From positions 94,426,001 through 94,490,000 of the forward strand of contig NW_026262734.1 in NCBI RefSeq assembly GCF_021869535.1: a stretch of 64,000 nt of DNA. The letters are read 5' to 3'. Positions 1-43,824 of the stretch are shown here, in pieces; positions within the stretch are counted from its first letter, which is position 1, and the number at the start of each line of letters is the position of its first letter. Made by a program: the position numbers and the translations under genes. The notes beneath the pieces were generated by a model, which was not told where the DNA came from, did no database searches, and saw only the letters and a list, made by a program, of their open reading frames with translations. Origin of the DNA: Mytilus californianus. Its lineage: Eukaryota.

Positions 1-607
1 CAGCTTCTTGATGTTTTACCTACAATCGCGATTTGTAGTGTAATTGATTTGTTCTGTTATGTTGTTTTATGTTTCTGATGAGTTAGGTACCCGTGTATAG
101 AAGGTGGTAAAAATTTCAGTACTAGTATCTTTACAGTTTGTGATTTGGCGACAAAATTGTTGTTGACTGCATTTGTTACATATAATACCATGTTCAAAAA
201 AGGTTTCGACGAATTGTTTTTTGTTGTTATGAAACTTGTATACAATGGCCTTATTTTAAGTTATGTGTATATTACACCCGCAACATGTAGGCTTAATTTC
301 TATAGAATTAATTCTCGTGTTATTGGTTATGTACAGGCACCTACATCAATTTGACGGCAGTTGTCCCTTGGATATACGTAATAATGTAAACACATGAATA
401 GAAAGTAATTCAAGAGTATGGACAGTCATAGGATTGCACACAATAAGCGATACATTATTTTTCTTTGATACACGTAAAATTATATACTAGTAAACTAACT
501 GAATAGTCAAAATGAACCAGAATGACTCTATGAGTCAAGCAAACATCCGAAAAAATATGATAGAAACTTTAAAATTTAATATAACAACACAAAAAAATGC
601 AAAAGTT

Positions 608-683
608 CTGAGCGAGGTTCGAACCCTTTCTTCAAATTCATCATTTATTAGTAGTTCTGTGCTCTAATGGTGGAGCTACGGCG
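608..683 (-). other. tRNA-like relic (A-box/B-box), probably a SINE head or tRNA pseudogene
   Basis: Minus strand reads gccgTAGCTCcaccatTAGAGCacagaactactaa...GGTTCGAACCtcgc. Acceptor-stem pairing is poor, so it is not called a functional tRNA. Confidence 0.35.
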
Positions 684-1189
684 ATTCTGATCATTATGAC
701 TCTTATTTAGAAGGTATATCGGTACAATTTATCGATGTTACAATTTTTTCTTTAAAAAGTTGTTTTTTATGTAATAAGGACACACTAAACCAATTTCATT
801 TTTGAAGTAAAAAGTAGTATGAATAACAACAGTCATAAAAAGCATAACTTTTTTTTTGGTTTGAAATGTCCTTCTTGGGGGATTCCCTGTTTTTTCCACA
901 TAAAAACACCCGAAAATCCGGATATTGGATTTTCATCATTTTTTAGGGTTAAATTAACTATTGATCACACATATCATACTATATGTAAATCGAGATATTG
1001 ATCAAAAAGCATTTTTATTTTTTTTTTTTATAGTAAATTTTATTCTGTCGGCACTTTTTGAAATTGGCCCTTCTGTGAAAAAAAATCCTCGGCATATTGG
1101 CCCTACCTCTTTCTTTCGTTGGAAAATTAAAATTACCAAACTCTGTGCAGTAATTGTGTGCATACTAAAATCATATCTTCCAGATTAAA

Positions 1190-2110
1190 CAATGGTTACC
1201 TTTGGTCACCCTTCATATATATTGAAACTGGTTACTTCCTAACGCCATACACGTGACAGATATTGTCTTTCGTTTGCTGTCGGCAGTTTACATAGATATA
1301 GATTTTGATTAAAGATTACATCTGGTCGCCATAGAGATTTATTGACTGGTGCCCTCTGGTCACCTTTCACATATATTAACTTTGGTTACCTCTGGTCACC
1401 TAACACAGATATTAACTTCGGTTATCTCTGGTCACCCTACTCATATATTGACTTAGGTTGCCTCTGGTCACCCTTCACATAAAATGACTTTATAACCTCT
1501 TTTCCTACTAAGTTATTGACCTGAGTTACCCCCGCACAATTATCAAACTTGTTAACTTGTAGGCAGTTCACACATATACAGATTTGGGTTACATTTGTCC
1601 CCTACAGATTTATGGACTGGTGCCCTCTGGTCACCCCTTCCCATTTATTGACTTTCTCTACATTTGGTCACCTTACATAGTAATTGACTTTTGTAACCTG
1701 TGGTCATCTTACACATATATTGATTTTAGTTAACTTTAGTCAGGTGACAAAGTTATGAACTTTGGCTAGCTCTGCGACATTTAAACAGATATATATTCTT
1801 TGATTAAATCTGGTCACCCTACGCATATTGTCTTAGTTAACATTCGCTTACCTTACAAATATATTGACTGGTTACATCTTGTCGCCCTTCACTGATAGTG
1901 ACTTTGGTTGACCTCTGGTCACCCTACATAGTTTCTGACTTACTCTGCTAACCCTACACATATGTTGATATTAATTACCTCATGTCATTCTGTAACTTGT
2001 AAACCTTTATTACCTCTTTGCAATTTAAACGGTTATAGACTTAAATAATATGGCACCTATTGTTTATATAATATTGACTGCGGCTACTTCTGGTCACCCT
2101 ACCCAAATAT
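1190..2110 (+). repeat. Degenerate 36-bp minisatellite array (core TGGTTACCTCTGGTCACC), forward orientation, upstream of the Ulp1 gene
   Basis: Recurrent ggttacctctggtcacc variants at ~36-bp spacing. Confidence 0.85.
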
Positions 2111-2183
2111 TGTGATCTTCTGTGCTAAACAAGATTGCACTTCTGTTTTCGTAGAATTCCAAAATTTAAAAGAAACTTAATTG

Positions 2184-5100
2184 ATGTCATTTGTTTCAGG
2201 TATTATTATTTGTATTACTTTGATTGTTAAAAATGATTATTTATTTAAAGCATTTTTTGAAACTATATGGGATTCATGGAAAGGAAATGCTGACGAAAAG
2301 TTTGGTACGGTGTATGGGAATGTTCTTTACGTATCGGATTTAATGAGCTTAAAAATTGAGGAGGAGTTGAATGATCAGGTAACAGTACTAATGGTTTAAT
2401 TTATGTAATAAAGGTTAAACGTTTTCAAAGATCTTGAACTCTCCTCTGAAACTACTGAACCAATTCCAACCAAACGTAAGCTTAATCATCCTTAGGGTAT
2501 CTAAAATAAAATTAAATCTGACATTGGTGAAAAGGTTCATTAGGTAAAGCATTTTCAGACAAATAAAACTACCCATTGTTTGGTTGATGCCACTAAATTG
2601 CTAATTTTTGTGACCCCTTAAAGAGTTACTGGCCTGTAAGTAATTGTGTTTTCTTTTATGCCAAGAAATATAGTCACTATGGCTTAATAGCATATTGGTT
2701 TAAAATGCATTGTTTTGCCATTGAAGAAAATATGACAGATACCAAAAAAAATTAAATACCAATTTGACAATGTAAGCACTACTTTATTTCCATTGAAAAG
2801 CAGAAATAATCATTGATGAAAGATTTAACAACAAAAAAAATGCAGGTAAGTCATTCAGGTTTTTGGAGGTCTTTTGATTTTATTTAGTTCTATAAAATGT
2901 ACAAGGATTTTTTTAAATAATCTGTCTTAAACTGATAACATAATCATGGTACTTTATGTTATGTGTTATCTTGATCAAACTTGTATGTCTTCACCTTTGT
3001 GATATTTAGTTTTGTTGATGGTTTCCTTTGTATCATACTGATTGAAAAGATCTGACCTTATCATTTTCTTTTTTTTTTCAGATAATTAATCTTTATTGTA
3101 GTGTACTGCAAAAACGGACGGATCAGTGTGTACAGGTAAACGAATTAAAAGTATTTATTTAATAACCGTTTTATCATATTTCAGTGCATTTATTTTAGAG
3201 TTGACTGATTTTTTCATCGGCTACTTTAAATCATGCTTTTTTTTTGTAACTTCCAGGATCAATTCATTTAATTTAGCTTTTTCTACATGATCCATTCCTC
3301 CATTAAGGGTATCTGAATTATCATTCTAAACTTGTTTTATGCATTTTTTATTCATTTCCAATTTCACCAAAGTAAACTGTGTATTGTAAAAGTTACTTTC
3401 GCACCCACCACCCTTTTTGCAGAGAATGAAATATTTGTTCCACTAAATCATCTTTTATTTTTTGCCTTTTATATAATTTAAGGTCTTTCTACCTTTCAGT
3501 TGAAAGACTTTTAGCTTTACTAAAGGATTATAATTATTATCATTATTTTGATATTATTATTTATATTTTGTTCGCCTTTTTTAAGTTGAGCTATTATTTT
3601 TAACAGATGTAGCTTTGACTTTGTTTTATATGATATCGTACAGCTTATGAGCTTTCGCCATTGCCCTAACGAAGACTTTTTACTCTCATTAATAGAGTTA
3701 CCTCCCCAATCTCGATTTTGCGTGTAGATACATCTACTGCGATATTTTATTAGTTTACTCAATTACTCGTTACACCCTTATGATGTCATATATTATTTAA
3801 CCGAAGCTATCTGGATATTCCTTATAAGAGTTATATCCCATTTGGAATTGTCGTTAAGGAAATATATGCACAACTCATTAACTATGAGGAAAATGAATTT
3901 ACTTTTATTCCTCGTATTTTTGATGGGTAATTTCATACTGACTTTGAAGAAGTATTGAACCAGGCAAGAAAAACCTTATATAATTTCACGTTCCGATGTA
4001 ATAGAAACAGTTAAATAAATCCAATGTTCTTGTCACACAATTTGTTTTATACATATTTCCGTTTTCCAGAAAGTGTCCCGTGCAGATTGTCTGATTCTGA
4101 CCTCAATTTTTGAAGGGAGGAAAAGCGTAACTTGGTTTAAAAAGGTATAATACTATATAATCATCTGTTATAAACTCTTTTTATATAAGTGCTTTTGATT
4201 TACACATAGATTACTCTTTTTACAGCTAAAAGCTGGATATTACCAATTCGCCTTTCACGTTTTAACAAAATAATAAGACATTCTAACATATTGATGATAT
4301 ATGTAAATTATCAAATGATAAATAATAAAACAATATGCTAAATATTGTATTGTGTATGGTATTATATTGCTGTTTATAAAATGTATTTAATGTTTCATCG
4401 GTCTTTTTTTTATCAGTTTGCAAGTTAATAATAACATTTTACAATACTTTTTTAGGACGATATACAACAGTATGACACTGTCATTGGGTGCATTAATGAC
4501 GGGAAGTGTCATTGGGTTGCTGTGGTAGGTTTATTTGCTCAATTAATGTTATTAATTACACTATTCAGGCATTTTTCCATGAGGTTATAAGTTAATAGAA
4601 AAATGAGTTGCAAGAACAGCATTTCAGACATTTCGTTGAGTTTTTAGTCATGTTAGTTGTTCTTCTATAACTTAATTCAACTTACTTGACTTAATATATA
4701 TATTTTCTCATACATTTTTCCAACTGATTTTGCACTCATTTATATGAAAGCATTTATACTGCATGGAAATGATAGTTAGAAAAGAAATATCAGATATAAA
4801 ATATTGGCTTCTTCGTATAAAATATTATCAAATATTTGCTTCTGAACATTGAGCAACAACCAGTAATTAAGCAAAATATTTATTTTTTTATAAATGTTAA
4901 TGTAAACAGATTTAAGTATGTGAAATTAAAAAGAGAGAATAATTTTTGTTTCAGGTTATGGATGTCCAACACCATATTGTGACAATTATGGACCCGCTCA
5001 AAATATCAAAGAAATTGAGAACATATGAAAAGAATTTCAAGTAAGATTGAAACTGTAGTTACATGACAGTCGTTTATTGCTTTAATGCATGTGATTTGTT

Positions 5101-8100
5101 TCAAAGTAAATTATTTCTGTGTTTGATATATATACTTAAAAAAAAGTTTATAATTCTGAAATTTTCAGAAGTGAGTCACAAGTTATAAGGACAAATCTAG
5201 AGAAATATAATTTGTTAATCTAAAATGAAAATTACTTCTGGTTGATACTGGAATTGAACTATAGTTGTATTATTGATTGCACAGCTTTGTAAATTGAATA
5301 TAGCAGTAAGAACTGAAGACCAGTTATTTTTTTCCAAACGTTGTTGATATCAACTTTAAAACAGCTGCAATTATTTTTTTTCCTACATTAGAAAGGTTGG
5401 TCAAATGAACGGTTTTCTATGGAATGTGCAATATCTCCTTAAGTATCATACATCTAGCTAGACATGTAAGTTCTATGATACAGTCCGGGGTAAGGCAATG
5501 GCTGGCATTATGGCTATAGCCAGCTTGACTTTTTAATATATATCAATTTTAAGTAACACATTTTTCTTTTCATATTATATTATGTAGCTACTTCACTAAA
5601 AGCAGAGATCTTGGTACATGGACAATCTGTACAGCAGTTGGGTATCCTCTGCAAAATGATTTTAGCTCATGTGGTGTTTATTGTTTGAAGGTACATAAAA
5701 CATTGGGCTTTGCATGTATGAATTGAGAGTTAATAAATGAAAGTTCAATTGAAGCTTGAATCTTAAATCAATGATATATATATACTAATAAAGATCACAA
5801 TTTTGCACGCAAAAGACACCCTTGTTGATTTTGAAAAAAAGGCAGAATCGTACAAACAAGATGAACAAAATATTGTTGTAAGTTGTAAACAACTTGTTTC
5901 CCAAACCTGTTTATTTAAATATGTGTAAACAATAACTTGGAATATATATCATGTAAACTATTTCAGTAAAATCCGCAAAGCACAAAGGTTGTGTGAAATT
6001 TAACCAAATCTATGATTTGCATAAATTACTTTAAATGTAATGGAAAGAAAAACAAATAAATATGTGGTACTTTTAATTTACCTTTTGTAAAAAAAACATT
6101 TTTATATCATTATTAGGCCTACATGAATCATTTCAGTAATTTAAACATTCAGTTTTGAACAGGCCATAGAAAATTTACAAAACAATGTGTACATTTAAGA
6201 ATTATTTTTTTAGTTCCTCGACCGATACCTAAGTAAGACAGATACATCTTTGGAATTAAACGTCCAAGCTGAAAGATTCACAATTGGCAGTGAAATTGTT
6301 CAAGCTGTGCGTAAGTAATCAATAGAATAAAAGCATTTACTAATAGTACCGTATGTTATGTAAATACTTAATATCTTCTTGCTAGACAATAAGTGAATCT
6401 AATAAAAAGGGAATATGAATTTTAACATGTTCAATAATGTGTTTGAAATCCTTATCTTTGATGTTTATCTCAATTCATTGATGATTTGTTTTTAATTTTA
6501 TCTATTGTTTCTGACCAAATTTCTTTACGCTATAAATGATGTATTTATGTTTCTTTAATGTATTATTCATTATTGATATGTTATACTTAAAAATGTAGTT
6601 TGGAAATAATAGCTTAATAATTCCGGTTGTTTTCTGTAATAATTTTTCTCTTTTTTCTACAGCTCAAACTGTACTTATTTTTATGATATTCCATGTCTTA
6701 TATATGTATGATAATGTGTTGTTGTCAAATATTACGATCTTATTAATGGAAATATAAACATGGAAAGTAGATGTTTAAAAATCAACTAGTTTTTGTAGGT
6801 CTAATTAAGTTAGCCGATATATTTATGCGATTGTCTTCTTCATATAAACTGCCGCTGTCATCAATGAGCATCACCATCATAATTACCATCTACGGGAAGG
6901 AACGTAAAAAATAACATCAACCAAGTGTAAACATTTTCAATTTTATGACTTATTATCAGCTGCTGCAATTTGTGATTTGGAGCAGAAGAATGTTGTTCCT
7001 AATTCATGTTAACATCTGTTTCTATTTTACTATAGAAACAAAAGGTGCTGTTATGACATGCTTCTTGTGTGCTAAAGAACCAACTAACATGGTAAATATA
7101 CATTTATAGATCGTTGATGTTCAACTTAACAGGGTGCTTTATTATTTTTATTGCTTATTTAAATACGTTTTATGGTTAAAATTGATAATTTTTTAACAGA
7201 ACCTTGTGATATTGTAGGTTAGAATATAAATGTTTTTTTTTATATCAATTTGATGAACTTTCACTAATATTAACATTTTTCGCAATAACTACATTAATTC
7301 ATAGAATTTGAACATGTCTATTAAATATTGCAGAGAGCATGTTCATGCTGTAAAAGGAATTTCCACAAAAAGTGTATGACTCCAGGACTATGCAGTCTGT
7401 GCTCAATTTTTCCACCTGGTGAGTGCAATAGAAAATTCTACCATTTCTAATTTTGTTTAAAGTAATACAATGAAATAGAATTTAATTTGCAAGGACAAAA
7501 TGCGATATAACAAAATTGTAGAATGATCATTGTTCTTCCATTTGTTCAATAATTCTATAAGTTGCGTTTAATTTCATAACAGAAGTCGACTTATTAATTT
7601 TTGTAGATATATTCATGTTGATATTTCTTACATTTTTTATAGATTGCACTAAATGAACTTATTCTAAGATATCTTTGAAATCCAAAGATGTGTTGTTCTC
7701 ACATTCAGACTCACATGGTAAAGGCAGACGTTTAATGTTCCCCCTCATGACTTAGTTGATTAATACAGAATGACGCTGGCATAGGTACCGTTTGCTTAGT
7801 GCACACTACTTTTTAAGTCTTCTTTAAATATTGTCTTTTCAAATGATTTTGTTATATAACTTGTCAGTTTCTTGTTTGCATTGTATAAGCTGTTGGATTT
7901 TATTTATTTTTTTGTTTCTTATATACAGATGTATGGTAATGTATAAAATACTGTGAACTTTTAGTTTGGTGTGCTTTATCCTAAATCTGTATGCTTCAAA
8001 TATAATCAATGTGTAGTCAATATGCCACTACTTTTACATATTATAGTTCTCACTTAATGTTCTGCTTGACACAATAATTACAATTTTCCAAGTTCACGTT

Positions 8101-11100
8101 AAGCTATTAATTTTTTTATGTTTCACCCACACTTATTTAAAAGCACTAAATGGTTCGTGTTGTTCAAGGTAATCTATACTTGACAGAGAGGTTACCCTTT
8201 TTTTATATTGCAATTTAATAATTTGAGTATATATTTTTACTCTGAATTGTACTGACTTTAAAAATATTAACCTTTAGTTTCTCTTCATGGATTTTGTTTA
8301 TTCTTTTTTTTAGAAAAAGTTAGACATTCAAAGAGAGGAAAAAAAGAACAACAACAGGTTTGATATCTATAATTGGTTCATCAAGACTACAGATGATTGT
8401 TGCATAACATTTTAAATGTTTTTTCATTGAAAACACTTTACCATCGAATTTTCTTCCTGATCATCTAAAAAAAATGAACGAACTTGCAAAAATTGTCAAG
8501 AACATTCACAATTAAAAATCGGGTCAATTTATGCTTGTTCTCACTTGATACTTCTGAATAAATCAATTGATTTCCTTATACAATTATTATATTTTTATCT
8601 TCTTTTTTCAGAAGTCCATAGAAATTTTAGATGAGAATGGTATGTATGCATTTAATTTGTTGATTAAATCAATTAATATGATGGATAATACCTTATGCAG
8701 ATTTCAGATTTTGTTAACTCTGATCAACTAATGCAAATATTGAATTTGGTTACCTCTGGTTATCTTATGCAAAAAAGTATTGTATTACCTCTGGTCAACC
8801 TATGCAATTATTGGATTTGATTACCTCTGTTAGTTTATGCAAATAGCGGCTTTTGTTACATCTGGTCAACTTATGCTAAAATAGTATTCGGTTAACTCTG
8901 GTTACCTTCTGCAAATATTTGAATTGTTACCACTGGTCACCTTCCGCATATAGGATTTGGTTACATCTGGTCATCTTACGCATATATAGGATTTGGTTAC
9001 CTCTGTGTACCTTATGCAGATAATTGATTTGGTAACCTCTTGTCACCTAATGAAGATAACGGATTTGGTTACTTCAGGTCAACTTATGTAAATATTGGAA
9101 TACGTTCATCTAGTCACCTATGCTGATATTGGATTTGGTTACCTCTGGTCACCATATGTATTTATTGGATTTGCTAGCTCTTGTCACATAATGTAAATAT
9201 TAGGTTTTGTTACCTCTGCTCACCTTACCGCGATATTGCATCTGAATACTTGTGGTCACCTTGAGAGTGGTTTGTATGCATTTAATTTATTGTATTAAAC
9301 CTTTAATATGATAGATATGTACACAAAGTTCATATAATGCTGCAACTAATATTCTTTTTGAACTTAAAACTTGCAATCGTTTCTGGTAATGGCCACTTAG
9401 GCTTAGTTGAACAAATCATTTTTTGTTTCTTGATTACCTTACACAAATATTTAATTTTGATTACATGTGGTCATTTTTACCAGAAATTAGATCTGTTAAC
9501 CTCTGTTTGCCTTACTACAACGGGGTTACTTCTGGTCACCTTATTCATATATTGGATTTGGTGACCTCTGGTCACCTTATGTTAATAACGGGTTTGGTTA
9601 CCTCTGGTCACCTTATTCATATATTAGATTTGGTTATCTCTGGTCACCTTATGGAAATACTGGATTTGGTTACCTCTGGTCACCTAATGCAGATTTCGGA
9701 TTTGGTGACCTCTGGTCACCTTATGTTAATATTGGATTCGGTTACCTCTGGTCACCATATGCATATTTTAGATTTGGTTATCTCTGGTAATTAACATTTA
9801 CATACAACTAGTTGATGTTTTTCATTTCATTTGTAGAAAGTTTTAGACAATCAAAGAAAGACAAAAAAGAAGAAGAACAGGTTTGATATACATTATGGAT
9901 TCAACAAGAATATAGAATATTATTACATTAAGTTTAATATATTGATAAAACTTTACACAATGATCATTATCTTTCATGCTCATCTACAAACAAATTTAAG
10001 AAAAATCATTGATCTTTAAAACATTGCCAAGAACACTGACAGTTGATAATTAAATAAAATAAAACTGATCCTCATAAGACACTTTTGGATAAATAAAATT
10101 GAATTTACTAATACAATTATCATATGTTTATCTTCTTTTTTCAGAAGTCCTCAGAAAATGTAGATCAGAGTGGTATGTATGCATTTAATTTATTGTATCA
10201 AACCTTTAATATGATGAAAACATACACTATATTTATATAATGCTGCAACTATTATTCTTTTTGAACTTGAAACTTGCAATCGTTTCTGGTAAAATGGCCA
10301 CTTAGGCTCGATTGAACTAATCATTTTTTTTTTGTTTCTTGATTACCTTACACAAATATTTAAGTTGATATCATGTGGTCATCTTAGCCAGAAATGGGAT
10401 TTGTTAACTTCTGTTGGCCTTAATATGCTAGAATGGGGTAACTTCTAGTCACCTTATTCATATATTGGATTTGGTTACCTCTGGTCATCTTATGGAAATA
10501 TAGGATTTGGTGACCTCTGGTCACCTTATGTTAATATTGGATTTGGTTACCTCTGGTCACCTTATGCAGTTTTCAGATTTGGTTATCTCTGGTAAATAAC
10601 ATTTGCATACAACTAGTTGATGTTTTTCATATCATTTGTAGAAAATTTGAGACAATCAAAGAAAGACAAAAAAGAAGAAGAACAGGTTTGATATACATTA
10701 TGGATTCAACAAGAATATGTAATATTATTACATTAAGTTTAATGTACCGATAAAACTTTACACAATGATCATTATCTTTCATGATCATCTACAAACAAAT
10801 TTAAGAAAAATCATTGATCTTTCAAACATTGCCAAGAGCACGGACAGCTGATAGTTCAATAAAATAAAACTGATCCTCATAAGATACTTTTGGATAAATA
10901 AAATTGAATTTACTAATACAATTATCATATACTTATCTTCTTTTTTCAGAAGTCCTCAGAAAATGTAGATGAGAGTGGTATGTATGCATTTAATTCATTG
11001 TATCAAACTTTTAATATGATGGAAACATACACTATATTTATATAATGCTGCAACTATTATTCTTTTTGAACTTGAAACTTGCAATCGTTTCTGGTAAAAT

Positions 11101-24644: not shown

Positions 24645-24983
24645 GTAATGATTTATTAGACACATGACACGTATTATCTTAACTTAAAACATATTTGATC
24701 ATTTGCTTAAAAAATATAACCTACTTGAGACAACAAACAGACCTAGTCCAATGTAATAATTAGCCAATTTATCTGCTTGACAAAATCATCATTAGGAATA
24801 GGTATTTGTTATATTAAATTATATCCATTTGTTCACATCAGTATCTTTGCAAAACATTTCAAGAGCAAACTGTATATGTCCTACTTTTAAAGCATTTAAG
24901 CACCTATGTAACATATACAATTTTTGAACGAATATCTAGAAAAGGCAGTTTTTCAAAATCAGTATAATATTTCATTATTTTTT

Positions 24984-30900: not shown

Positions 30901-33900
30901 TAGCAAAGTCTTTGTCAATATTAAGATTTGGTTCAAGTTATCAGAGGTAACTGAAGTCCGGATAATGTGTTATTTTTCGATGACTGGATACGTAGAGACA
31001 AATATAAAAAAGAAGATGTGGTTCGATGACTGGATACGTAGAGACAAATATAAAAAAGAAGATATGGTATGATTACCAATGAGACAACTATCCACAAAAG
31101 ACCAAAAATGACACAAACATTAACAACTATAGGTCACCATACGGCCTTCATCAATGAGCCTGTTTCTTTGGATTTTTTAGAAGAACAAAGTAGTAAGTAC
31201 ATATTTTAAGTAAATCTTTTGATTATGTTTTGATACCTTTTATCCATTTTGTAACGTTGACATATATTCTTAATGTCAACTGGTGTCAGATAGTATCTTC
31301 TATCGTGCACATCAAAATGCCCTTGATCTCTAGCCCATTTCCATGCTTTGCACAATATTTCCATGGGTTTTTTCCCCTATTGATAATGAAATAAAATTAA
31401 ATTCGTGTCAATTACAATTAATTTCAAATTTAGTTAAAATCTTTTTGAGCTTAAGGATTTTTTCAAATCAACACAAAATATGTCGTTGTATCAATATATG
31501 TCATTGTAAAAATATATGTCTTCTAGAATATTTTATCATCAATGCTATTCAGCTTTAAACTGGTTTTTTCATTAAAATATTTCATACAAGCGTCCGATAT
31601 TTATGTAAATGCATTAAATGACTCTCTGGCAAGCCAATTTTATCCTAATCATTTTATTTTTGATTTATTTCAACCTATTCATTCATTATAATCTTTGCAA
31701 ATTATGAAAAAATGCGCCGGAAGACAAACACAGACATCGAAAAGAACAGAATGGTTGAGAAAATATTAAACTCCAATAATGTCAGCATACACAATTTTTA
31801 TTATCATTGTGTTTATAAGAGTGCCAGCAACTTATAATTGAAAAATAAGTCAATTCGTTATGAGCAATAAATTATATATAATACCGACGACATGAATACC
31901 TGATCAAGTAAAGCATCTATATAAAGCAGTAAGCTGTGATCTGGGCGTGATTGGTGTTTTTCCTCTTTTATCTGTAAACTGTGTCCATTGTGTTTTAGTT
32001 GTTGCCGAATTATTACTGCTTTTTTACTCAAATGGGTCAAAAATCTGTGTAAGAAGATATTAACATGCCCTTTAATGATTTTTTTTTACATGTACAACGT
32101 CACTGGTTAGTACTGTTTTGCCAAACGTATCATTATTATATTTATTACAACAGCTTGTAAGCAATATTTAAGATCTATCGGACTTGAAGAAAAGGATTAT
32201 TTTTTCTAAAAATATGTGTAAGGCTACTTCGAATAACTGCTATGGTTGTTGTGTTCTCCTTGTAAATTGATAACTTATCATCAAAATGATATATACCAAA
32301 TTCTATATAATTTGATACAGGGATTCTTTATATAATAATTTCAACCATGACAGGGTGTATTGACCCGCTCATCACATGAAATGTCAGGTAAACTAGCCAG
32401 AAACTCATGAATGGTGTATGCCCGGTGAATACCTGTTTAAATGTGTTTGGTTTAGTAATATGATAAATGCATTTAATTCCCACTCTCAAGACACGGACAA
32501 AAGGTTGCTTAACTACAACAAGGATGTTAGGATCAATAAATAATGATGTTCAAACGCTTAAAAGTTATAAATTAATTTATAGTTTTGCATCATAAAAGAA
32601 AAGTAAAAGAGATAAATGAATATTACATTAACATAACATACTGGAATGACACATATGCCTGACAATTATTTGCCCTGGTATTCAAAGGACCTGTTTTTTT
32701 TCCTCTTGGTTTATTACATCTAAAATAAACATGATAAAATTTAAACAAATATGCATCTTAACTTTATAGATAACCAAAGAGAAAAATGTTGTGCAATATT
32801 TCAGAAAATTCATAGTTCAATACGTTTAAAAGCTTTCGGAACTATCTGTTATTAAAGGCCATACTATAATTACTGTATAAACTATAACACAAAACGTATA
32901 TTATTGAAAAAAAGCAAGAGAATAACATACAACCAGAAGTCAAGATTATACAACTCATCTCTTTCAAAACTATACCAATATTATTTTCTGTCACAAATGT
33001 ATCTTTTAACTCAGCATTGTCTTGCAAAGTTGATATGCAAGATATGTAAATAGATTCTTTAAGAATGTTTACGATTGTTACTTAAGTTGTTCTCTTTTTC
33101 TATTTATTGTTTATTTGGAGAAAAACAAGAGTGAATTTATTTCAAGATAAAATTCCTTTATAGATTATCGACTTAGATGATTAAAGTTACCTTTCACACC
33201 TGTATTGCAATGTGGTTTTATTTGCTTTCCTGTGAATAAAATTCCCTGTGATTGTTATATCCATTAAATGCTTGGTTATGACGTCTTCGTTGTCCACTTC
33301 ATTTCTGTTGAATGATAAGCAAAAACTGAAGCCAAAGTCACAAATGCTAGCTGATAAAACACAACAATATGTTTCAGTGTAATAGTGTGACCAAAAATTC
33401 ATCCATATATTCAGAAACATTGGAAAGAGTTACACCATAGTATAATAGACTTAAATTGTCCCCCAAAAAATAGAGTTCTTAAAAATGATCCCTTTGTTAA
33501 TACAGTGATTTTTATATTTTGTAAGACTATTTGAAGTTCAGTAAAATTATTCTGAATAACAAACAGAGTTATTTTTCAATAATCTGAAGGTATATGTTTT
33601 GCTGTGATAGATATTTATTTTCTTTTAATTCTATTGAAACCATTAGGTCATAGGAAGAAGGTAGCATATAGAAATTAGTTGATTTCAAAACTATATATTT
33701 TCGATTAAAATAAAATTTCCCATACCTTAAACGTCTAACAATGCAATCAGTACCATTTTTCCGTTTTTTGATGAAGGTGGATCTCACAAACTCTACGAAT
33801 GGCATATCTAGGGTAAGAAAAGCATATGTATTGCTATGTAGTAACACTAGTTTACTTGTTATAAATTTAAAAACAAATGATGACATCGATGAAAAATACC

Positions 33901-36900
33901 AACAAACGACCTCTGCACAATAAAATTAACGGTACCAATTTTCTTGCACCAGATGCGCATTTCGACAATACATGTCTCTTCAGTGATGCTCGTTGCCAAA
34001 TTATTTGAAATCCAAAGCTTATATAAAAGATGAAGAGCTATAATCCAAAAGGTCCAAAAAGTATAGCCAAATCCGTGAAAGAAATCAGAGCTTTGCATGA
34101 GGGAGATACATTCCTTAATTTATAATAATTTCTAATATTTTGTAACAGCAAATTTTAATAACACAAAAAAATAGTTGCATATAATATATTTGAACGTTTC
34201 AACAGGCGCAAACCTGCACATTACACGTAAAACAGCAGTAAAACATTAAAAGAAAAGACGCACTATAAAAGCAAATAATGGAAAATGGCTTAACTCTGAC
34301 AAAACAATTAACGAGTTACAAAAAATACAATTATAAACACAGTATTAATACAATAATAAAACGCATTTGCAGTATAACATAGACGTTACAGTTAATAATA
34401 AAAAAGGAGGACACATGATACAACTATTGCGACAAAATGACGTTAGATAAACCACTTTAAATTTCGCATGTAAAGTCAAATTTAAGTATAATAATTTTGT
34501 CGTTGGAAGTACGGAGAAATGGAAATAAAATGTGTTTTAAATGCATTGTTGACTTTCGAAAAGCCTTCGATAAAGTCATGCTCATTGGTAGTATCTATAA
34601 ACTGCAACTTTATAATACAACTAATTATTTTTTATAGAATATTGACGTCTATGTATACTAATGGTAGGTTATGTATAAAAGTGGATGATAAAATGACTTT
34701 TACTTTTTATAATAAAATTGAGAATAAAAATGGGGAATGTGTCAAAGAGACAACAACCCGACCGTAGAAAAATACAACAGCAGAAGTTCACCAACAGGTC
34801 TTCAATGTAGCGAGAAATTCCTGCTAATTATAAGTTATTCAAATCATTTTAAAATCACTGATGATAAGTATGGCTAGTGAACATTTCCGAAGGAACAATA
34901 TTGTACCTTCAACATCATGTGTCATGTTATAGTTGCTGAGTTCTTCGTTGCACACATCAACAGGAATAAAAAGGTTATCATCATTTGTTGCATGCTTATC
35001 ATTCGTGTGGTGATCAAGTTTGCCACTGTCACCTAAAATTTGTTGTATAAACGTTACAATTAACAAAAAAACGTAATAATTTATAATTAATACTAGTTTA
35101 TCTGTTAAAATAAAGCTTTTTTGCATCTGAATGTATTTGCCAATTAGAAAAACTTTGCCTCTAATGCTGATTGATATCAATGCAGTAATTATGCAATCAA
35201 ATTATGTAAAGTAAACTTATATAAATATCACATTTACAATACTTCCTTTAATATTTTTCTTTTTCAAAAACAGTCTACAGTGAAAAAACGTAAAACGATT
35301 TAAGGTAGATCATTACTGAATTTTTTTCTCAGACATAATTTTCTTATACATAGCCACAATTTAGTAGAAAATCAAAAGAAAAAGGGTGAAAATAAATCTC
35401 GTTTTCTTGCGAAAAATGGAAATTTCATTATCATTCCTTTAAAGAAAATTCACCAAATAAGTTATCTTCCGTTAATTAGCTCAGTTGACAAATTGAATCA
35501 AACAAAGACTGATAGCCGGTTTTTACAATAACACTTATTTTTTCAATGATATAATGCACTTATTTACATTTATCAAACAAGAGTTTTAAAAATGAATAGC
35601 ATTTATGTCTCAAAATTTGCAGTTTTAAATAAAGAACTTTGTCGCTTGTGTGCTGCTATTTTACAATTCAAGATGGCGATATACAGATATATAGTGATGA
35701 TCTACCTAATTCAAAGATATAAGGCTTAAAAATGTGTTCCGTCTACGTAAGACTCATTAGGGTCGCTCCTATCGAAAATGTGAAAATGCCTAATGAAGAA
35801 CAAAGTTAAAGTAAACTTATTTCATTTCGTTTTGCCAAAAACAATTTGATAAAATATCAAATATATAAATATGGACATTTTACTGATTCTATGGTATTTA
35901 TCCCTTTCTGAGCACAATATTGATCAACATTTTACCAAACGTGGGTCATTTGATCGAAGTCCTTCCTTAGTCGAAATATAATAATGACGACAAATATTTT
36001 GCTTTCCTCTGAATTTTATATAATGACGTCATTGGAATAGGTGATCATGCCCGATGAAGTCAGACAAGAAGAGCATGACTTTTTGTAAATAATCTAAACA
36101 AATTATCAAATTTTATTGGAATCATTAGATTAACAGATTCCACAACTATATCTCGTGTTATAAGATATTTCCCAACTATCAACCGTAGACATTATTTTTT
36201 TAACATAGATTTACATATGCGTTACTTTAAACTATAACTGTAAAGGTATCTCTTTATGAGAGATAATCATAAATTATATAATTTCTATTATCAGTTACCT
36301 TTTGGCTGGAGTGACTGGTAGTGGTTTTCGAAAATGTGCCCAAGAAGAATAGGATTACCGGAAAAACCATCACAACCAGTTACCCAAAGGACACTATCCT
36401 CATTATTGGTACTGGGAGCACTGGTGACAATAATTATGTCTCTCTGTAGCATTCTGGACATTCCAATGACCACAACATGGTCTGCGTACTCTCCATTCTG
36501 TAACATCCTGTCACAGTAGTCCGGAAAATTGTCTTCAACGAAGTTTTCTAATAACACAATGCCTTGACTGCCCTATTGATTGAAAGAAAGCTACTTACAT
36601 AAGTCTTTATTAACTACTGTACATTGAAATTGATTAATACAAAACAAATACTTTTATAACTACATTTTATCAAAAATCATCATGATCATAACATACATTT
36701 TTTATTTATTTTATTGTTTTTTGTCAATACCTATTATTTAGCATTGTACTATATTAACTGTAAATGATTTATTTAAACATCTGCAGAAAAAAGCATTCTG
36801 GTTGATATGAAAGTCTTAACTGATGCTTATTCTTTTATCAGTTTGTAAATCTTTAAATATTAAATTGCATTAATCACAGGTATTACGGGCAGTTACGTCA

Positions 36901-39146
36901 ATTCCAAATTAATATTCTGTCGGAAGTAGTTTTGATGGTATTTGTGTGTTAATAGCTTCTTAACTGATTTAAATCATATATTTAAGTTGTGCTGATGCGC
37001 CACTAACGTTGCCAACGGTTCTGATTTGTCCCCTGAAAACATGTCCAACTAATTCTTTATGTTTCTGTCCATGGAGGAGTTTGATAATTAGTGAATGTAT
37101 TTAACAAGTTAATTAGTTTACCTCAAAACTAGGATGTGTTGATATGTAGTTTACAACATTTGTTCTTAATTGTTCGGGAGCAATAACGTCTGCGCCAATT
37201 CTATCTAGCTGGCATGTGATTGCTTCAAAAAAACAATTCCCATTCCCTGGTGTTTGACCTCTGTATTCTAAGCCATGGGATGAACAGTTCCTCTTAAGTC
37301 TCTCAACTATTAATGTTTGTTCCTCGTTTGAAGCTATGGATTGCTTTATAGCAATTTGTAGTTCATCAGGTGTTTGGAATGATTTCCCTTAATATTAGAA
37401 TATAAGGTTAAAATTTCTTCACTTCAAATTTACAGCTAAATGACATTGTTTATACATACTTATGTGTATTCAATTGTAATAAAACGTATCATTGAAAATA
37501 TTACTTGTTTATTCAGGGATCATTTGACAGATTTGTTAAGAGTGATATGATTCTGGGTAAACTCTGAATTTTACAATAAAATTTGAATTATGATTCTTTC
37601 ATTTCTTTGTGAGGTTGTTGACATTCACCTCTTTAGAATTATAAATTAACTTTTTCAGACCTTCTGCTCTGAAATATTTGTATCACAGAAGTCTGACATT
37701 TTTGGCTATTCATAAATTTATTCAAAAACAATATTTGACTTTGTTATTCATGATTATTGAAAGCTATGATAATATGCTGGTGGTTGACTGGTTTTGTGTA
37801 AATTATTTTGTTTTGAATTAAACAAATAAAATGAAGATACAGAGCCAAAAACATTCTAAAATTTGAATGATGGCAGCAGCTAGATGCATGTAATTGGTAT
37901 TGACATTTTGTTTTAGAAAATGTGTGTGTAGGTGTGTATGTGTGTTGGTGTGTTGGTGTGTGTATGTGTGTTGGTGTGTTGGTGTGTATGTGGGTGTGCT
38001 GGTATGTGTGTGTGGGGAGGTAAAAATTTGATATGAATCCTTTCTTTTTACTAATAAAGGGCATCATAAGAAAATTGAAATAAAACACTGATCAGTATTA
38101 AGTGAACTGCCAAAGTGTGTTATGTACACTAGTTTTTAGATAATAAACAAATGATAAAGTAAGGAATAAACCGCAAACCAATTCCGTGGAATGATGTTTG
38201 TCTTGTTCCCGATTTTGTGTTTATTGTCGTGGCTTTGTCAATTTGGTTATGACAAGTGGATTTGATTAAGTGCCTTTTGAATTTTCTGTTTTTCAGTTTC
38301 CAATTTGCGTGCCAACAGATATATTCAACTACAAAAGTCTACAGTATTAACATAAAAATAACACTACTGTGTTATAAATGTATATCTATAATATAATACA
38401 GATAAAGAAATAAATCACCTGATGCTAAGCATATCTTTTCTTTCATCTCATTTGCTTTTTCTGTTAAGGTTTGTGCGTGGCGAAGAATATACTGTTTTGA
38501 ATTTGTATCACATGCTAAAATGGTAGGGAAATATAATATTTGTGCGTGTAATTTCCTAGAATAAATCATATTTTTTCAATTTGCATATGTACACAAAAAA
38601 ACAAAAACAGTAACAATTTTCGATTTGTTGGAATAAGATACTAATTTTGAAACACTTTTAAAAAAAATATATACGCAGTCGCTGAGCCATTACAAATTGG
38701 CCAAGGATAATTGATCGTAGCTGAATAAAGTTTTAAAAAATGAAGAGCATATTATCCATGCCATCGGTCGTTGTAAAATATTTAGCATAAAAGGTCAATC
38801 CGTGGTAAAATCAGTATAAATTCAAGCCTAAATGAATTATTTCTCAATTGTATGATCTAAACAGCGTAATCTATACAATACTGTATGAAAAATATCACGA
38901 CATTTGTGGCGGTTTGGGCATAAATGAGAAAACACAATTCATACCCAATTCTCTGGCTTTTTTCTCCAAAGAGGTTGCCTCAATATATATGGCTTCAATC
39001 TGTTTTTTAACTTCTTCCTTTTCTTCATGTCGCAATTCATGGAGGTCTTCCAAATTAAAGTTTTCCAAACCTGTAAGATATGGAAATGGCGGAATAAATA
39101 ACGATGTTTCAAATATACACCGCGATAATGTATCATAATTTGACAT
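24984..39146 (-). CDS. OTU-domain-fused MULE transposase (UIM-like, OTU, WRKY/GCM1-like Zn, DDE, SWIM, SWIM-like), 19 exons, ~1,084 aa if two 1-nt lesions are corrected
   Basis: Exons (minus): 39146-38945, 38514-38419, 37387-37122, 36572-36299, 35032-34907, 33807-33726, 33304-33191, 32719-32642, 32044-31900, 31376-31237, 30197-30111, 29604-29504, 29394-29220, 28522-28426, 28090-27980, 27313-27144, 26628-26527, 26319-26093, 25646-25189 (or to 24984 with one A fewer in an A9 run). All intron phases match. All introns are GT-AG except the acceptor at 30198-30199, which reads AT. Motifs: PGNGNCFFEA...HYQS (OTU); YRCERC...C...HNGH; FLDATYK, FMVDRD, CWFH, TNNLVE (MULE); CNC-x8-CKH (SWIM). The ATG at 39146 may be preceded by an unseen upstream exon. 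Confidence 0.88.
25189..26319 (-). CDS. Tandem SWIM and SWIM-like Zn fingers, C-terminal exons of the transposase
   Basis: YNVDIVNEVCNCPAATTRGMCKH spans the 26093/25646 junction. It is followed by VVNLTSFKCTCFANSHGKHCVC. Confidence 0.85.
27144..29604 (-). CDS. MULE transposase DDE catalytic core exons
   Basis: VVFLDATYKGLTAYGYSFYALVARDEQQGRGTPLSYCI (D at 29517-29519); SFMVDRDTKEISAINEVFPNSSVLLCWFHVLQA (D at 28507-28509, CxxH); NW...WANYGR...DTNNLVER (E at 27146-27148). Confidence 0.93.
30595..30960 (-). repeat. Degenerate 36-bp minisatellite, reverse orientation, in a transposase intron
   Basis: gtgaccaaagtt, gtggtaaccaaag, ggtgaccaaagttaac and taaccagaggttaccaaag are reverse-complement variants of the core. 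Confidence 0.6.
31900..33304 (-). CDS. WRKY/GCM1 (FAR1-like) Zn DNA-binding domain exons of the transposase
   Basis: Exons 33304-33191, 32719-32642 and 32044-31900 splice to QYRCERCNKPRGKKTGPLNTRANNCQAYVSFQFLTHLSKKAVIIRQQLKHNGH. This is the C..C..H..H pattern typical upstream of MULE catalytic domains. Confidence 0.7.
33895..34170 (-). mobile_element. Short hammerhead-bearing interspersed repeat (retrozyme or PLE pLTR derivative) inserted in a transposase intron
   Basis: An ~280-bp segment around the ribozyme, unrelated to the flanking exon or minisatellite sequence. Boundaries are approximate. Confidence 0.5.
33946..33989 (-). ncRNA. Minimal type I hammerhead ribozyme (Penelope/retrozyme-type), intact core
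   Basis: Minus strand reads gcatca CTGAAGA gac atgtatt gtc GAA ATGCGCAT C tggtgc. It has a CUGANGA core, 3-bp stem II, GAAA, palindromic stem III (AUGCGCAU), AUC cleavage triplet and a 6-bp stem I (gcatca/tggtgc). Confidence 0.8.
35300..35709. mobile_element. MITE with short TIRs (Kolobok-like, TTAA context) in a transposase intron
   Basis: ttaaggtagatcat at 35300-35313 and atgatctacctaa at 35697-35709 are reverse complements apart from one base. Confidence 0.5.
36299..37387 (-). CDS. OTU-like cysteine protease (deubiquitinase) domain exons of the transposase gene, preceded by a UIM-like motif
   Basis: Exon 37387-37122 encodes KSFQTPDELQIAIKQSIASNEEQ...GQTPGNGNCFFEAITCQL...EQLRTNVVNYI (Cys codon 37233-37235). 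Exon 36572-36299 encodes ...DRMLQNGEYADHVVV...LLGHIFENHYQSL (His codon 36321-36323). The junction is phase 0. Confidence 0.88.
37920..38013. repeat. Compound (TG)n/(TGTTGGTG)n microsatellite
   Basis: Visible TG-rich low-complexity tract. Confidence 0.9.
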
Positions 39147-39759
39147 TCCTTAACTATAATTTTGGAATTTGTGCAGTTTTTCTAGTTTTTGAAGTATTTG
39201 ATTTGTACTATCAACCCTACGTTTCGAATTCTGATTTTAGGAATTGAATATTGGTCTTAATATGACCTCTACTATGATTAATGAAATAATTATGTTTGAA
39301 ACTGTAACCATTACCTTCAAAATCGCCTGTTACACCTGTCATATTTCCTCTATTTAATTCACGAACAAAAAACCCTGTAATGAGAATGTGAAATATATCA
39401 TATTTATTTTTAAAATGTCAACAAAATCTTTTTTTTTATTAATTGTATATAACCGGAGAAACCATGAGACCCCTTAAAAGTCATATAATTATATATAGGA
39501 TGAACAGATTTAACCAAAATGAATTGCAGTTCAGGGTAATAAGAGGTTGCCTAAGACATTATTTGCGTCAGATTACCAAAAGTAAATAAATTATAGGATG
39601 GGTATCCAGAGATATCCATAATCATTATCTGTTTATGATGAGCAATATTCATATTCAATATAAATGTTGCGGGAAGTGTTAACCAAATTTAACATCTGGA
39701 TAGTGTGAAACGAGATAATCGATGCCAATAAAGATTCATTAATTATGAATTGTGACCAG

Positions 39760-42700
39760 AACCTAAAGTTAATACCTGTGTATGGTGACCAAAGGTAACC
39801 ACATTCCAAATCTGTAAAGGGTGACCAGAGGTAATTTAAGTAAATATATGTATACGATGACCGGAGGTAATCTCATTCAATAATATGAAAGGGTTACCCA
39901 ATTCGAAATCTGTGTAGGGGGGCCAGAGGTAAACATATTTAATATCTGTGTAGAATGACCTGAGTTAACCACATTCAATACCATATTCAAAGTTTTGGTT
40001 GGGTGACCAGAGGTCACCCTATTCAATATCTTTGTAGGGTGACCAGAGGTAACCATATTCAATATCTTTGGAGGGTGACCAGAGGTAACCATATTTAAAG
40101 TTTTGGTTGGGTGACCAGAAGTAACCTTGTTCAATATATGTGTAGGGTGACCAGAGGTAACCATATTCAAAGTTTTGGTTGGGTGACCAGAGGTAACCTT
40201 ATTCAATATCTGTGTAGGGTGACCAGAGGTAACCATATTCAAAGTTTTGGTTGGGTGACCAGAGGTCACCCTATTCAATATCTTTGTAGGGTGACCAGAG
40301 GTAACCATATTCAATATCTTTGGAGGGTGACCAGAGGTAACCACATTCATCATCTTGGCAGTGTGACCAGAGATTACCAAAATAAACAGCTTACTAGTAG
40401 ATTTAATAAAGGTATCTACATTCAATATTTATGTATGGTGTCTAAAGATAAATAACTTTATATCTGTGTATGGCGACCCGAGGTTACCACATTCAAAAAA
40501 GGCAATTGCTATATATATATATGTGTGTGTTGACAATGGCAACATAATTCAATGTATGTGTACAGCGACCAGAAGTTGCTATATTAATTATAAAAGAAGC
40601 GCAAAAGTGTGAACCGGGATAACAGATGCTAACCAAATACATTATTTATGAATTGTAACCATAGGTAACATAAGCCAATTTATTGTAGGTTGACCAGAGG
40701 TTACCATGTTCAATATCTGTGAAGAGTAACAAGAGATAACCATACTCAATATTTTGTAGGGTGACCAGAAGTAACCACATTCAATATCTTTTTAGATGAC
40801 AAAAAAAAACCATATCCAATATCTTTGTTAGGTGACCAGAGGTAACCATATTCAAAGTTTTGGTAAGGTGACCAGAGGTTACCATGTTCAAAATATGTGT
40901 AGGGTGACCAGAGGTAACCATAGTCAATATATGTGTAGGGAGACCAGAGGTTACCACATATAATATCTTTTTAGGTGACCAAAGATAACCATATGCAATA
41001 TCTTTGTAAAGTGACCAGAGGTAACCTTATTCAATATTTGTGTAGGGTGACCAGAGGTAACCATATTTAAAGTTCTGGTTGGGTGACCAGAAGTAACCTT
41101 ATTCAATATATGTGTAGGGTGACCAGAGGTAACCATATTCAAAGTTTTGGTTGGGTGACCAGAGGTAACCTTATTCAATATCTGTGTAGGGTGACCAGAG
41201 GTTACCATATTCAAAGTTTTGGTTGGGTGACCAGAGGTCACCCTATTCAATATCTTAGTAGGGTGACCAGAGGTAACCATATTCAAAGTTTTGGTTTATT
41301 GAACAGAAATAACCTTATTCAATATATGTGTAGGGTGACCAGAGGTAACCATATTCAAAGTTTTGGTTGGGTGACCAGAGGTAACCATATTCAATATCTT
41401 TGGAGGGTGACCAGAGGTAACCACATTCATCATCTTGGCAGTGTGACCAGAGATTACCAAAATAAACAGCTTACTAGTAGGTTTAATAAAGGTATCTACA
41501 TTCAATATTTAAGTATGGTGTCTAAAGATAAATAACTTTATATCTGTGTATGGCGACCCGAGGTTACCACATTCAAAAAAGGCAATTGCTATATATATAT
41601 GTGTGTGTTGACAATGGCAATATAATTCAATGTATGTGTACAGCGACCAGAAGTTGCTATATTAATTATAAAAGTAGCGCAAAAGTGTGAACCGGGATAA
41701 CAGATGCTAACCAAATTCATTATTTATGAATTGTAACCATAGGTAATATAAGCCAATTTATTGTAGGTTGACCAGAGGTAACCATTTTCAATATCTGTAA
41801 TTGTTTACCAGAGGTTACCTTTTTCAATATTTGTGTACGTTGATCAGAGGTTACCACGTTCAATTTATGACCGAAGTTTACAAAATTAAATATTTAAGTA
41901 GGCTAACTATAGGTAACCAAATTAAATATTTATGCACGGTGACTAGAGGTAATCAAGTTTTCTATCTGTGTAAGATAAGAGGTAACCACATTCAAAATAT
42001 GTGAAGGGTGACCAGAGGTAACCCAATTCAGTATTTGTGTAGGGTAATTTGAGGTATTTAAAGTTCATATATGTATAGGGTGACCAGAGGTCACCAAATT
42101 CAATATTTTAGTAATTTATGTATGATTAATCATATTAAAACTCTTGCACAGTCATCAGTACATTTTCATTATTACCGGACTTAAGAAAGAACTCACACGA
42201 TGGGAGCGTTCAAGACATGATTAAGAAGATTCCTGTTGTTCCTTACTTTTTTAATGTTGTTGTAAATTTCTTTTGATATATCTGTTTACTCCTTGGTTTT
42301 GATTGTATTTGTCTTAGTAGGGTGACCAGAGATTACCAAAATCAAGACATATTTAGGGTAACAAGAGGTAGTTAAAGCCAGTATATAGGTTTTGAAACCG
42401 AACATAACTCAATTAAAAGTATTTGAAAGATGTCCAGATATAACCGTGATCATTATCTGTGTAGGATGGCAAGTTTATAACTAATTCAAACATCTGTGTT
42501 GGGTGACCAGAGGTTTCCATATTCAGTATATGTGAAGGGTGACCAGAGGTAACCATATGCAATATCTTTGTAAAATGACTAGAGGTAACCTGATTCAATA
42601 TATGTGTAGGGTGACCAGAAAGAACCATATTCAAAATTTTGGTAGGGTGACCAGAGGTCACCATATTCAATATCTTTGTAGGGTGCCCAGAGGTAACCAT

Positions 42701-43240
42701 ATTCAACATCATTGTAGAGTGATTAGGGTTAACCATATACAACATCTTGGTAGGGTGTCCATATATTACCAAATTAAACATCTAAGTAGGGTTATTAAAG
42801 TTAAATAAATTCAATAGTTATGCACAGTGTCTAAAGATAAAAAATAGAATATATGTGTAGGGTGACCAGAGGTCACCACAATTAATTATGTAAAAGGTGA
42901 CAAGGTGCAACAAAATTCAATATCTGTGAAGGCTTGCCGGGTTGACAAGAGGTAACCAAATTCAATATCTTATAATGTTTATTGCAATTCAATACATGTG
43001 TTGGGTGACCAGAGGTCACCACAATTAATTATGTAAAAGGTGACAAGATGTATAGAAATTCAATATCTGTTTAAGGGCCATTCAATATCTATATCTGTGT
43101 CAATTAATTAGAAGAACCACTGTAAATTTATCTGCAAAGGAAGTAAGGTTAATAAAGTTACTATGCATTTTGTATCAAATGACCAGTGTAACTATATGCA
43201 CTATTATTTTCTGTATAGGGTGACCAGAGGTAACCAATGG
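39760..43240 (-). repeat. Long 36-bp minisatellite array, reverse orientation, upstream of the transposase gene; includes an internal direct duplication with 1,080-bp offset
   Basis: Many gggtgaccagaggtaaccatattcaa units. The block aataaacagcttactagtag occurs at 40381 and 41461. Confidence 0.92.
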
Positions 43241-43723
43241 CAGTTTAAAGGTACCCGAGTTCGAGGCATACCATCTTTTTAGTTATATTTCATGAGAGTG
43301 CAATATAGGCCATTAGGTTATTTTTTTTTTTCTGAAAAATAAGCCATATCACTCGTTAATAGAGTTACAGATGAATCTTCTATGCATTTTCAATTGTTTG
43401 TTTTGAGTGAATCATTATGATTATTGATTATTTGTGTATTATTTTTAACTTTTTGTACCTCTCTCAACAGTATCCTTTGAAATATGGTGATTCCAGAACT
43501 TTGCATTAAGCTCATATCCGTATTGTATAACAGCAATTATAACCTGAGTATGCTGCACTGAGTATCCCCTTAGTAACGTACTTTCACTTTAAACCGGAAA
43601 TCATGTACTATTTTTTGTCGCGTATGGACTCAATTTTAACCGTTTCTGTTCAGGTGACCAGTGGGCACCGTTCAGCGTAACTATTATCCTTGTGACATGT
43701 CGATATATTTTATCTAACTCTAG

Positions 43724-43786: not shown

Positions 43787-43824
<38 letters not shown>

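Follow-up and report, generated by a model that had tools for sequence, protein, structure and literature searches.

The present analysis concerns a 64,000-nucleotide stretch of the genome of the mussel Mytilus californianus (RefSeq assembly GCF_021869535.1, contig NW_026262734.1, positions 94,426,001 to 94,490,000 of the forward strand; hereafter the window), which is AT-rich animal DNA devoid of N, its nearest proteins and loci being those of Mytilus. This window very probably contains all but the leftmost 3.2 kb or so of a Mytilus DNA transposon of about 47 kb that belongs to the Mutator superfamily, has convergent arms and carries both OTU and Ulp1 proteases. The family was placed in this superfamily because it combines terminal inverted repeats (TIRs), a 9-bp target-site duplication (TSD) and the transposase domain of Mutator-like elements (MULEs). 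On the right side, sequence comparison revealed a sharp boundary at position 43695 of the window, common to the copies of M. trossulus (L001) and M. coruscus (L003), and the terminal 43 bases (GCACAAGGATAATAGTTACGCTGAACGGTGCCCACTGGTCACC) are identical at 42 of 43 positions to the family TIR, which begins with GCACAAGGATAATAG. In a deleted copy of 14.5 kb from M. trossulus (L001), this 43-bp TIR is perfect and inverted at both ends (13893 and 28396 of this locus), and the direct 9-mer ATGTGACCT flanks the element on both sides as its TSD. Another TIR, with two mismatches, was found at L011 17411-17453; the TIR core had no match in a metagenome scan. The nine bases directly beyond the right TIR of the window (43696-43704, CATGTCGAT) are expected to be the TSD of the window copy.

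No left TIR was found in the window or in a related M. californianus locus (L009), even when up to 14 mismatches were allowed, because the left end lies further to the left. Another M. californianus locus (L010, chromosome JAKFGE010000012.1, 59.85 Mb) carries a perfect left TIR at 7129-7171; its left arm extends over 2.65 kb from the TIR and then jumps to the equivalent of window position 22251, which corresponds to an internal deletion of 23 kb. The segment 8481-9782 of L010 matches L009 1-1304, i.e., the sequence upstream of the Ulp1 exons. In turn, L009 1846-3094 matches window 1-1250 at 99.6% (L009 1846 being window base 1), and L009 is collinear with window 1-34244 at 99.4-99.6%. It follows that a full-length copy has its left TIR about 3.2 kb before the start of the window and that both protease genes are internal to the element. 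The window copy would thus be about 46.9 kb long, with Ulp1-PHD inside it, and its left end is expected to read CATGTCGAT and then GCACAAGGATAATAGTTACG about 3.2 kb before base 1. An animal MULE of more than 40 kb, located at 1190-43240, had been proposed by a reading of the sequence alone (hereafter the sequence-only reading), together with the definition of its TIRs and TSD by alignment of copies. The size is borne out (about 47 kb) and the alignment did yield a 43-bp TIR and a 9-bp TSD (in L001, the TIR being also present in the window and L010). The proposed interval lies within one element, but this element ends on the right at 43695 and starts outside the window.

Three loci of the M. 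californianus assembly GCA_021869535.1, distributed on two chromosomes (L008 on JAKFGE010000010.1 at 15.25 Mb, L009 at 35.76 Mb, and L010), are 99.3-99.6% identical to the window over 13-32 kb. The window and these three loci differ pairwise by 0.35-0.48% over 10 kb, and all 84 sites with two segregating bases are private to one copy, with no two-versus-two grouping. This star-like pattern fits a recent burst from one source, and the family appears to have been active very recently. The sister copies differ in the number of cassette units described below and in small insertions resembling miniature inverted-repeat transposable elements (MITEs). Furthermore, shorter deletion derivatives were found in five Mytilus species, with different breakpoints in M. 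trossulus, M. galloprovincialis, M. coruscus and M. edulis. Two lesions are private to the window copy when compared to the other copies examined: (i) an extra A (A9 instead of A8) near 25232, which puts the conserved C-terminal tail of the transposase out of frame, and (ii) a G to T change at 23401, which destroys the donor site of the penultimate exon of the partner gene, i.e., the gene facing the transposase gene. The window copy is probably no longer autonomous and would depend on intact sister copies.

The features of the window copy are the following (position, strand, feature and basis):

1..1130, plus: internal sequence of the left arm (match to L009; left TIR about 3.2 kb before base 1)
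1131..2150, plus: array of a 36-bp minisatellite upstream of the Ulp1 exons (repeat analysis)
2251..5690, plus: exons of a Ulp1 protease, peptidase C48 (splice phases, residue spacing, Pfam, atlas search)
2251-2378, plus: Ulp1 exon with an LND motif
about 2431-2475, plus: Ulp1 exon
4456-4524, plus: Ulp1 core exon with the His (HW; ...CHWVAV)
4955-5040, plus: Ulp1 core exon with the Asp (...IMDPL...)
5588-5690, plus: Ulp1 core exon with the Gln and Cys (Q..C; ...PLQNDFSSCGVYCLK)
7037-7092 and 7334-7419, plus: two exons of a PHD-like C4HC3 zinc finger (read from the sequence)
8314..21288, plus: about 29 micro-exons, 44-nt me2 and 28-nt me1, 72 nt per cassette (splice chain identical to RefSeq XP_052085248.1)
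10000..17240, plus: tandem amplification of an 803-bp cassette unit, nine copies; recent, eight copies being 98-99% identical and the last one diverged
21962..24667, plus: conserved 3′ exons of the partner gene and stop codon (P0098, P0102, P0105)
21962-22021, 22444-22710, 23266-23400 and 24535-24664, plus: the individual 3′ exons
24984..33807, minus: MULE transposase proper, 14 exons, with a WRKY/FAR1-like zinc finger, a DDE core and a SWIM finger (mapping of homologs and a paralog, Pfam)
36299..39146, minus: upstream exons on the same strand as the transposase (Pfam OTU, atlas search, phase match)
39146-39119, minus: exon with an ATG
39070-38945, minus: charged-helix exon
37387-37122, minus: exon with a UIM-like motif and the OTU Cys box (Pfam, atlas search)
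36572-36299, minus: exon with the OTU His box (Pfam, atlas search)
39600..43300, minus: array of the 36-bp minisatellite in the right arm (repeat analysis)
43653..43695, minus: right TIR (match to the family TIR)

The transposase exons from 33303 down to 24987 were defined by mapping homologous proteins of deuterostomes onto the window and also by a tblastx comparison with a paralog from M. coruscus (L004, 35-80% identical), in which the transposase gene has identical intron positions. The last exon (25647-24987) has 72 related clusters in a representative library, including full-length proteins from fish, hemichordate, newt and echinoderm. All the full-length homologs harbor the domains PF10551 (MULE) and PF21056, P0061 and P0065 being among the homologs with both, and none harbors an OTU domain. 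The PF10551 domain was detected in the window exon 28189-28566 (E = 8.6e-6) and in the homolog P0065 (E = 6.7e-17). The motifs D, D, CxxH and E are readable in the translations of the exons, with the motifs LDATYK, VDRD, CWFHVLQ and NNLVER. A SWIM finger (CxC...CxH), split by an intron between 26093 and 25646, lies C-terminal to the catalytic core; the Pfam match to SWIM in P0065 is weak (E = 0.043). Membership in the Zisupton or KDZ groups was rejected, given the PF10551 and PF21056 domains of the transposase and the TSD of 9 bp. It should also be mentioned that one transposase intron (window 30500-31070) contains two minisatellite-like motifs on the minus strand and a 46-bp tandem duplication (30976-31068).

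The OTU exons are situated between the right TIR and the transposase exons. Pfam recognized OTU on window exons with E-values of 3.5e-4 and 0.043, and the atlas score was 0.94. The exon 37387-37122 encodes a UIM-like motif (ELQIAIKQS) and the Cys box (GNGNCFFEA), and the exon 36572-36299 the His box (ENHYQSL). The Cys box (37267-37122) reads NGNC, the position three residues ahead of the catalytic Cys being an Asn instead of the Asp of most OTU proteases. Eighteen exons, the first of which has its ATG at 39146, can be chained through canonical splice sites with matching phases, and thus stay in frame. Protein searches with P0061 and with an alignment including the window exons retrieved neither a full-length Mytilus transposase nor an OTU-containing relative.

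On the plus strand, the three core exons of Ulp1 are phase-compatible, and the spacing of the catalytic residues (His, 17 aa, Asp, about 45 aa, Cys) is typical of C48 peptidases. For the Cys exon, C48 peptidases make up 84 of the 100 nearest clusters of the atlas feature search, and the Pfam match to C48 has an E-value of 0.19. The PHD finger gave no Pfam match on its split exons; Pfam and structure searches on the Ulp1 and PHD regions, made at the level of single exons, mostly gave nothing, signals being obtained for the Cys exon only. Downstream, all the micro-exons are bordered by AG/GT sites and share one open frame; they encode a Lys/Glu-rich repeat, and their introns are filled with the 36-bp minisatellite. 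The RefSeq protein XP_052085248.1 (P0102, 396 aa), annotated at the sister locus L009, has a splice chain identical to this array, followed by the four 3′ exons. Judged from alignment gaps, L008 has about five and L009 about six 803-bp units fewer than the nine of the window, in copies that are 99.5% identical. Therefore, since the cassette number varies among near-identical copies, the length of the Lys/Glu repeat changes fast, and the array clearly illustrates the growth of a protein repeat through tandem duplication at the genomic level.

The 3′ part of the partner gene shares 35-67% amino acid identity with two divergent relatives (L004 and L005) and is always convergent with the transposase; such conservation indicates that the partner gene is real and selected. 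No Pfam family was found for P0102. The AlphaFold2 model of the C-terminal protein had a pLDDT of 42 and was not used for fold searches; the C-terminal part is helical and conserved, without a recognizable fold. Across 22.7-25 kb, a conservation profile among close copies did not separate exons from introns. The segment 21490-22722 of the window, absent from L001-L003, was considered as a possible insertion; this was rejected since the exon that it contains is 67% conserved at the amino acid level in L005, and L001-L003 are a deletion lineage. In the conserved frame, the stop codons of the partner and transposase genes are about 320 nt apart. The convergent layout noticed initially, with 3′ coding exons about 340 bp apart, is thus corroborated, and it is kept in L004 and L005.

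Whether the exons of the two arms form two genes is, in our judgement, an evenly balanced question. They could instead belong to three or four genes: (i) a Ulp1-PHD gene, (ii) a gene for the Lys/Glu micro-exon protein, (iii) OTU, as a separate gene or as a 5′ leader, and (iv) a transposase gene starting at the ATG at 33805. The Ulp1-PHD gene would then end at the read-through stop at 7448, after the exon 7334-7419, and the micro-exon protein would start at an ATG near 7714. In agreement with this separation, RefSeq splits the partner strand at L009 into models of 108, 151 and 396 aa, the first two corresponding to Ulp1-PHD, besides separate fragments of the transposase. One RefSeq model at L009 starts to the left of this locus, either in the 1.35 kb that remain up to the TIR or past them. 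Moreover, P0102 starts with MVKAD..., encoded just 3′ of the PHD exon, and the exon 33807-33726 opens with an ATG exactly at the start point of the OTU-less homologs. However, both critical junctions (7419 to 8314 and 36299 to 33807) are phase-compatible and have canonical sites: the exon 7334-7419 ends in phase 1, the phase required by the first micro-exon (8314), and a strong pyrimidine tract (13 of 15 bases) belongs to the acceptor at 33807. Furthermore, Gnomon models of poorly expressed repeats are frequently split. The strong acceptor and the phase match favor splicing of OTU to the transposase, a fusion that is frame-compatible only, and OTU may also be a separate upstream product. Likewise, a single plus-strand gene of at least 43 exons is possible, on the basis of compatible frames only.

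In this respect, the sequence-only reading stands for its exons more than for its genes. It had described a 19-exon MULE transposase gene on the minus strand; the gene and its exons are confirmed, but the chain that we counted has 18 exons. The OTU that it attributed to this transposase is indeed encoded upstream, on the same strand and inside the element, but the fusion is frame-compatible only and RefSeq splits it. As for the Ulp1-PHD gene of at least 43 exons, the Ulp1, PHD, micro-exon and 3′ exons are all confirmed as exons, but not as a single gene, RefSeq having three models (108, 151 and 396 aa).

Returning to the two-protease transposon of about 47 kb, several observations weigh against this interpretation or some of its parts. 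The RefSeq models are fragmentary, OTU and transposase being kept as separate models and Ulp1-PHD being separate from the micro-exon model. No copies other than the window, L008 and L010 were seen to contain the OTU exons (collinearity of these two loci with the window extends to about 36.47 kb, hence the downstream OTU exon is covered), and the transposase homologs from non-molluscs are devoid of OTU. Ulp1-PHD was seen only in the window and L009 and is kept in none of the derivatives from other Mytilus species; L011 and L012, considered as Ulp1 carriers in other species, were rejected because both are short derivatives without Ulp1. The Pfam support of Ulp1 at the exon level is weak (the above E = 0.19) and searches against solved structures gave no match. 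The left TIR of the window copy is off the window, and no full-length copy with both ends and TSD was seen, only the deleted M. trossulus copy. Rather than a fourth copy, the window could represent another allele at one of the three assembly loci; no shared variants support this. Lastly, the anti-silencing or turnover role put forward by the sequence-only reading is an inference.

The mobility of the large copies themselves can also be questioned. It is improbable, in our view, that transposition is confined to the short deletion derivatives and that the copies of about 45 kb represent one old insertion, multiplied by segmental duplication or in the assembly. This scenario would account for both ends and the TSD being seen only in the 14.5-kb copy of M. 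trossulus, and the arthropod MULEs described in PMC13359780 are 1.4-10 kb long. However, the large copies are located on two chromosomes, the four sequences have no shared derived sites, homology ceases exactly at the TIR at the visible ends of the large copies (window 43695 and L010 7129), and L010 derives in one step, by deletion, from a full-length copy at its own locus. It is far less probable still that both genes are domesticated host neighbors: both are intron-rich, and the transposase homologs are apparently single-locus and annotated as ordinary genes in fish and hemichordates, but TIR, TSD, near-identical copies, many deletion derivatives and private inactivating lesions contradict domestication. 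In the hemichordate homolog loci (L006 and L007), neither the partner gene nor the protease exons were found. Unlinked genes, or a single-copy syntenic pair lacking TIR, TSD and empty site, had been named at the outset as the outcomes opposed to a mobile element; they are excluded by the TIR, the TSD and the near-identical copies, which lie on two M. californianus chromosomes with the gene pair within one element.

The 36-bp minisatellite is in plus orientation at 1.1-2.1 kb and 8.3-21 kb and in minus orientation at 39.6-43.3 kb. Its core (CCTCTGGTCACC) and the inner end of the TIR (CCACTGGTCACC) are the same but for a single base, and the arrays may be subterminal repeats bound by the transposase. 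Mirror-image arrays upstream of each gene had been noticed previously: the opposite orientation on the two arms was found again, but plus-strand arrays also lie within the micro-exon introns and so are not solely upstream.

Other repeats were observed in or around the copies. A 424-bp MITE-like element occupies different sites in the sister copies L009 (3095-3518 and 26353-26776) and L010 (3418-3845 and 10958-11381) and is absent at the matching sites of the window; it seems to be a second small element, mobile at present. A repeat of about 350 bp (window 60948-61298) occurs several times in L010, L011 and L012, and it also abuts the left breakpoint (equivalent of window 22030) of the short derivatives of M. 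galloprovincialis and M. edulis. An interspersed repeat family (window 52997-54500 and 56225-57710) is common to L001-L004 with 70-94% identity; its open reading frames at 53794-54613 had no Pfam match. Outside the element, the window harbors an inverted repeat (49465-49641 and 49955-50131, with 177-nt arms that are 90% complementary and 313 nt apart) that is MITE-like or a hairpin. Just beyond the right TIR (window 43781-44321 and 45498-45577) lie a (CGTCGG)n run, a 192-bp tandem repeat present 2.4 times and, further on, a perfect (AG)40. In L001, the flank beyond the right TIR (12590-13472) is a reverse match, at 75%, to the left arm of the family in L010 (7537-8393), suggesting that the L001 copy may have inserted into an older copy of the family. 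Finally, a 608-aa RefSeq model with a Phage_integrase domain (Crypton- or DIRS-like) spans all of L010 1-24450, including the deleted MULE copy.

Among known systems, the Mytilus element resembles maize MuDR by its MULE DDE transposase, long TIRs, 9-bp TSD, two convergent units and internally deleted non-autonomous derivatives. However, its length is about 10-fold greater, its introns number some 50 or more, it carries protease domains and minisatellite arrays, and its partner gene has no detectable similarity to mudrB (as judged by the lack of a Pfam match, without direct comparison to MURB). As for the proposal that a Ulp1-PHD gene occupies the mudrB position, a second, convergent gene does lie inside the element, the link of Ulp1-PHD to this gene being frame-compatible only. 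A functional precedent for the proposed anti-silencing role, by analogy, would be VANDAL21/Hiun, a MULE whose accessory gene VANC counteracts host silencing; unlike the enzymes considered here, VANC is not a protease.

Ulp1 is known in Mutator elements of hydra, lancelet and plants (PMC2836005). Like the plant Kaonashi/KI-MULEs and CUMULEs and the hydra and lancelet elements, the Mytilus element is a Mutator with a C48/Ulp1 domain, but its Ulp1 is accompanied by a PHD-like finger, lies on the strand opposite to the transposase, shares the element with an OTU protease, and is found in a bivalve. A MULE with an OTU domain was described in Hydra (MuDR-6_HM, group 14, "Ovarian Tumour Gene"; PMC6446971); it is listed with one open reading frame, no TIR and no mention of Ulp1, and this description sets it apart. 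OTU or Ulp1, with or without PHD, are also found in Ginger1 and Helitrons (PMC2836005). In Ginger1, these domains are likewise accessory to a DDE transposase, but the latter is of the integrase type and is fused C-terminally to one protease or the other, whereas the Mytilus element has a MULE transposase and both proteases. Rehavkus also combines a PHD finger with a minisatellite beside the TIR (PMC6446971), but its PHD is inside the transposase and its minisatellite is restricted to a single end. Neither OTU nor Ulp1 is mentioned in a survey of bivalve transposons (PMC10294476), and one full-text search for Mutator-like transposases with OTU and Ulp1 retrieved only the Ginger paper; a single MULE with both proteases, a convergent layout and this size was not found described. 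The combination, size and layout thus look new. The novelty claimed initially holds for the two proteases together, but not for each of them, MULEs with OTU only or Ulp1 only being already described (PMC2836005, PMC6446971).

Because the element belongs to the MULE family, it is expected to transpose by cut-and-paste: the transposase would bind the TIRs, and perhaps also the related subterminal arrays, then excise and reinsert the element. OTU and Ulp1 would be accessory factors; they may strip the SUMO or ubiquitin marks used in silencing, in DNA-damage signaling or in the turnover or regulation of the transposase, and the PHD finger may target chromatin. Abortive repair has given rise to the many internally deleted derivatives. 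Taken together, these steps would depict an active, intron-rich animal Mutator of about 47 kb in which a chromatin-targeted SUMO protease (Ulp1-PHD) and a transposase-tethered deubiquitinase (UIM-OTU) disarm SUMO/ubiquitin-dependent silencing or stabilize the transposase, tuned by expandable micro-exon cassettes and TIR-related minisatellite arrays; we regard this complete picture as tentative and rather unlikely to hold as a whole.

If true, it would reveal a transposon-borne anti-silencing module in animals. The element itself appears to be by far the largest and most intron-rich Mutator element described. The mussel genome is known for its presence/absence variation; since the element looks recently mobile in such a genome, it may contribute to structural polymorphism in mussels. 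Unrelated transposon superfamilies (Ginger, Helitron, MULE and Zisupton) repeatedly carry protease domains that act on ubiquitin-like modifiers and, to our knowledge, the role of these proteases when borne by transposons has never been demonstrated. With both proteases, intact sister copies and natural derivatives lacking one or both, this Mytilus family provides a concrete system for asking whether such enzymes serve transposons against host silencing or in the control of the transposase.

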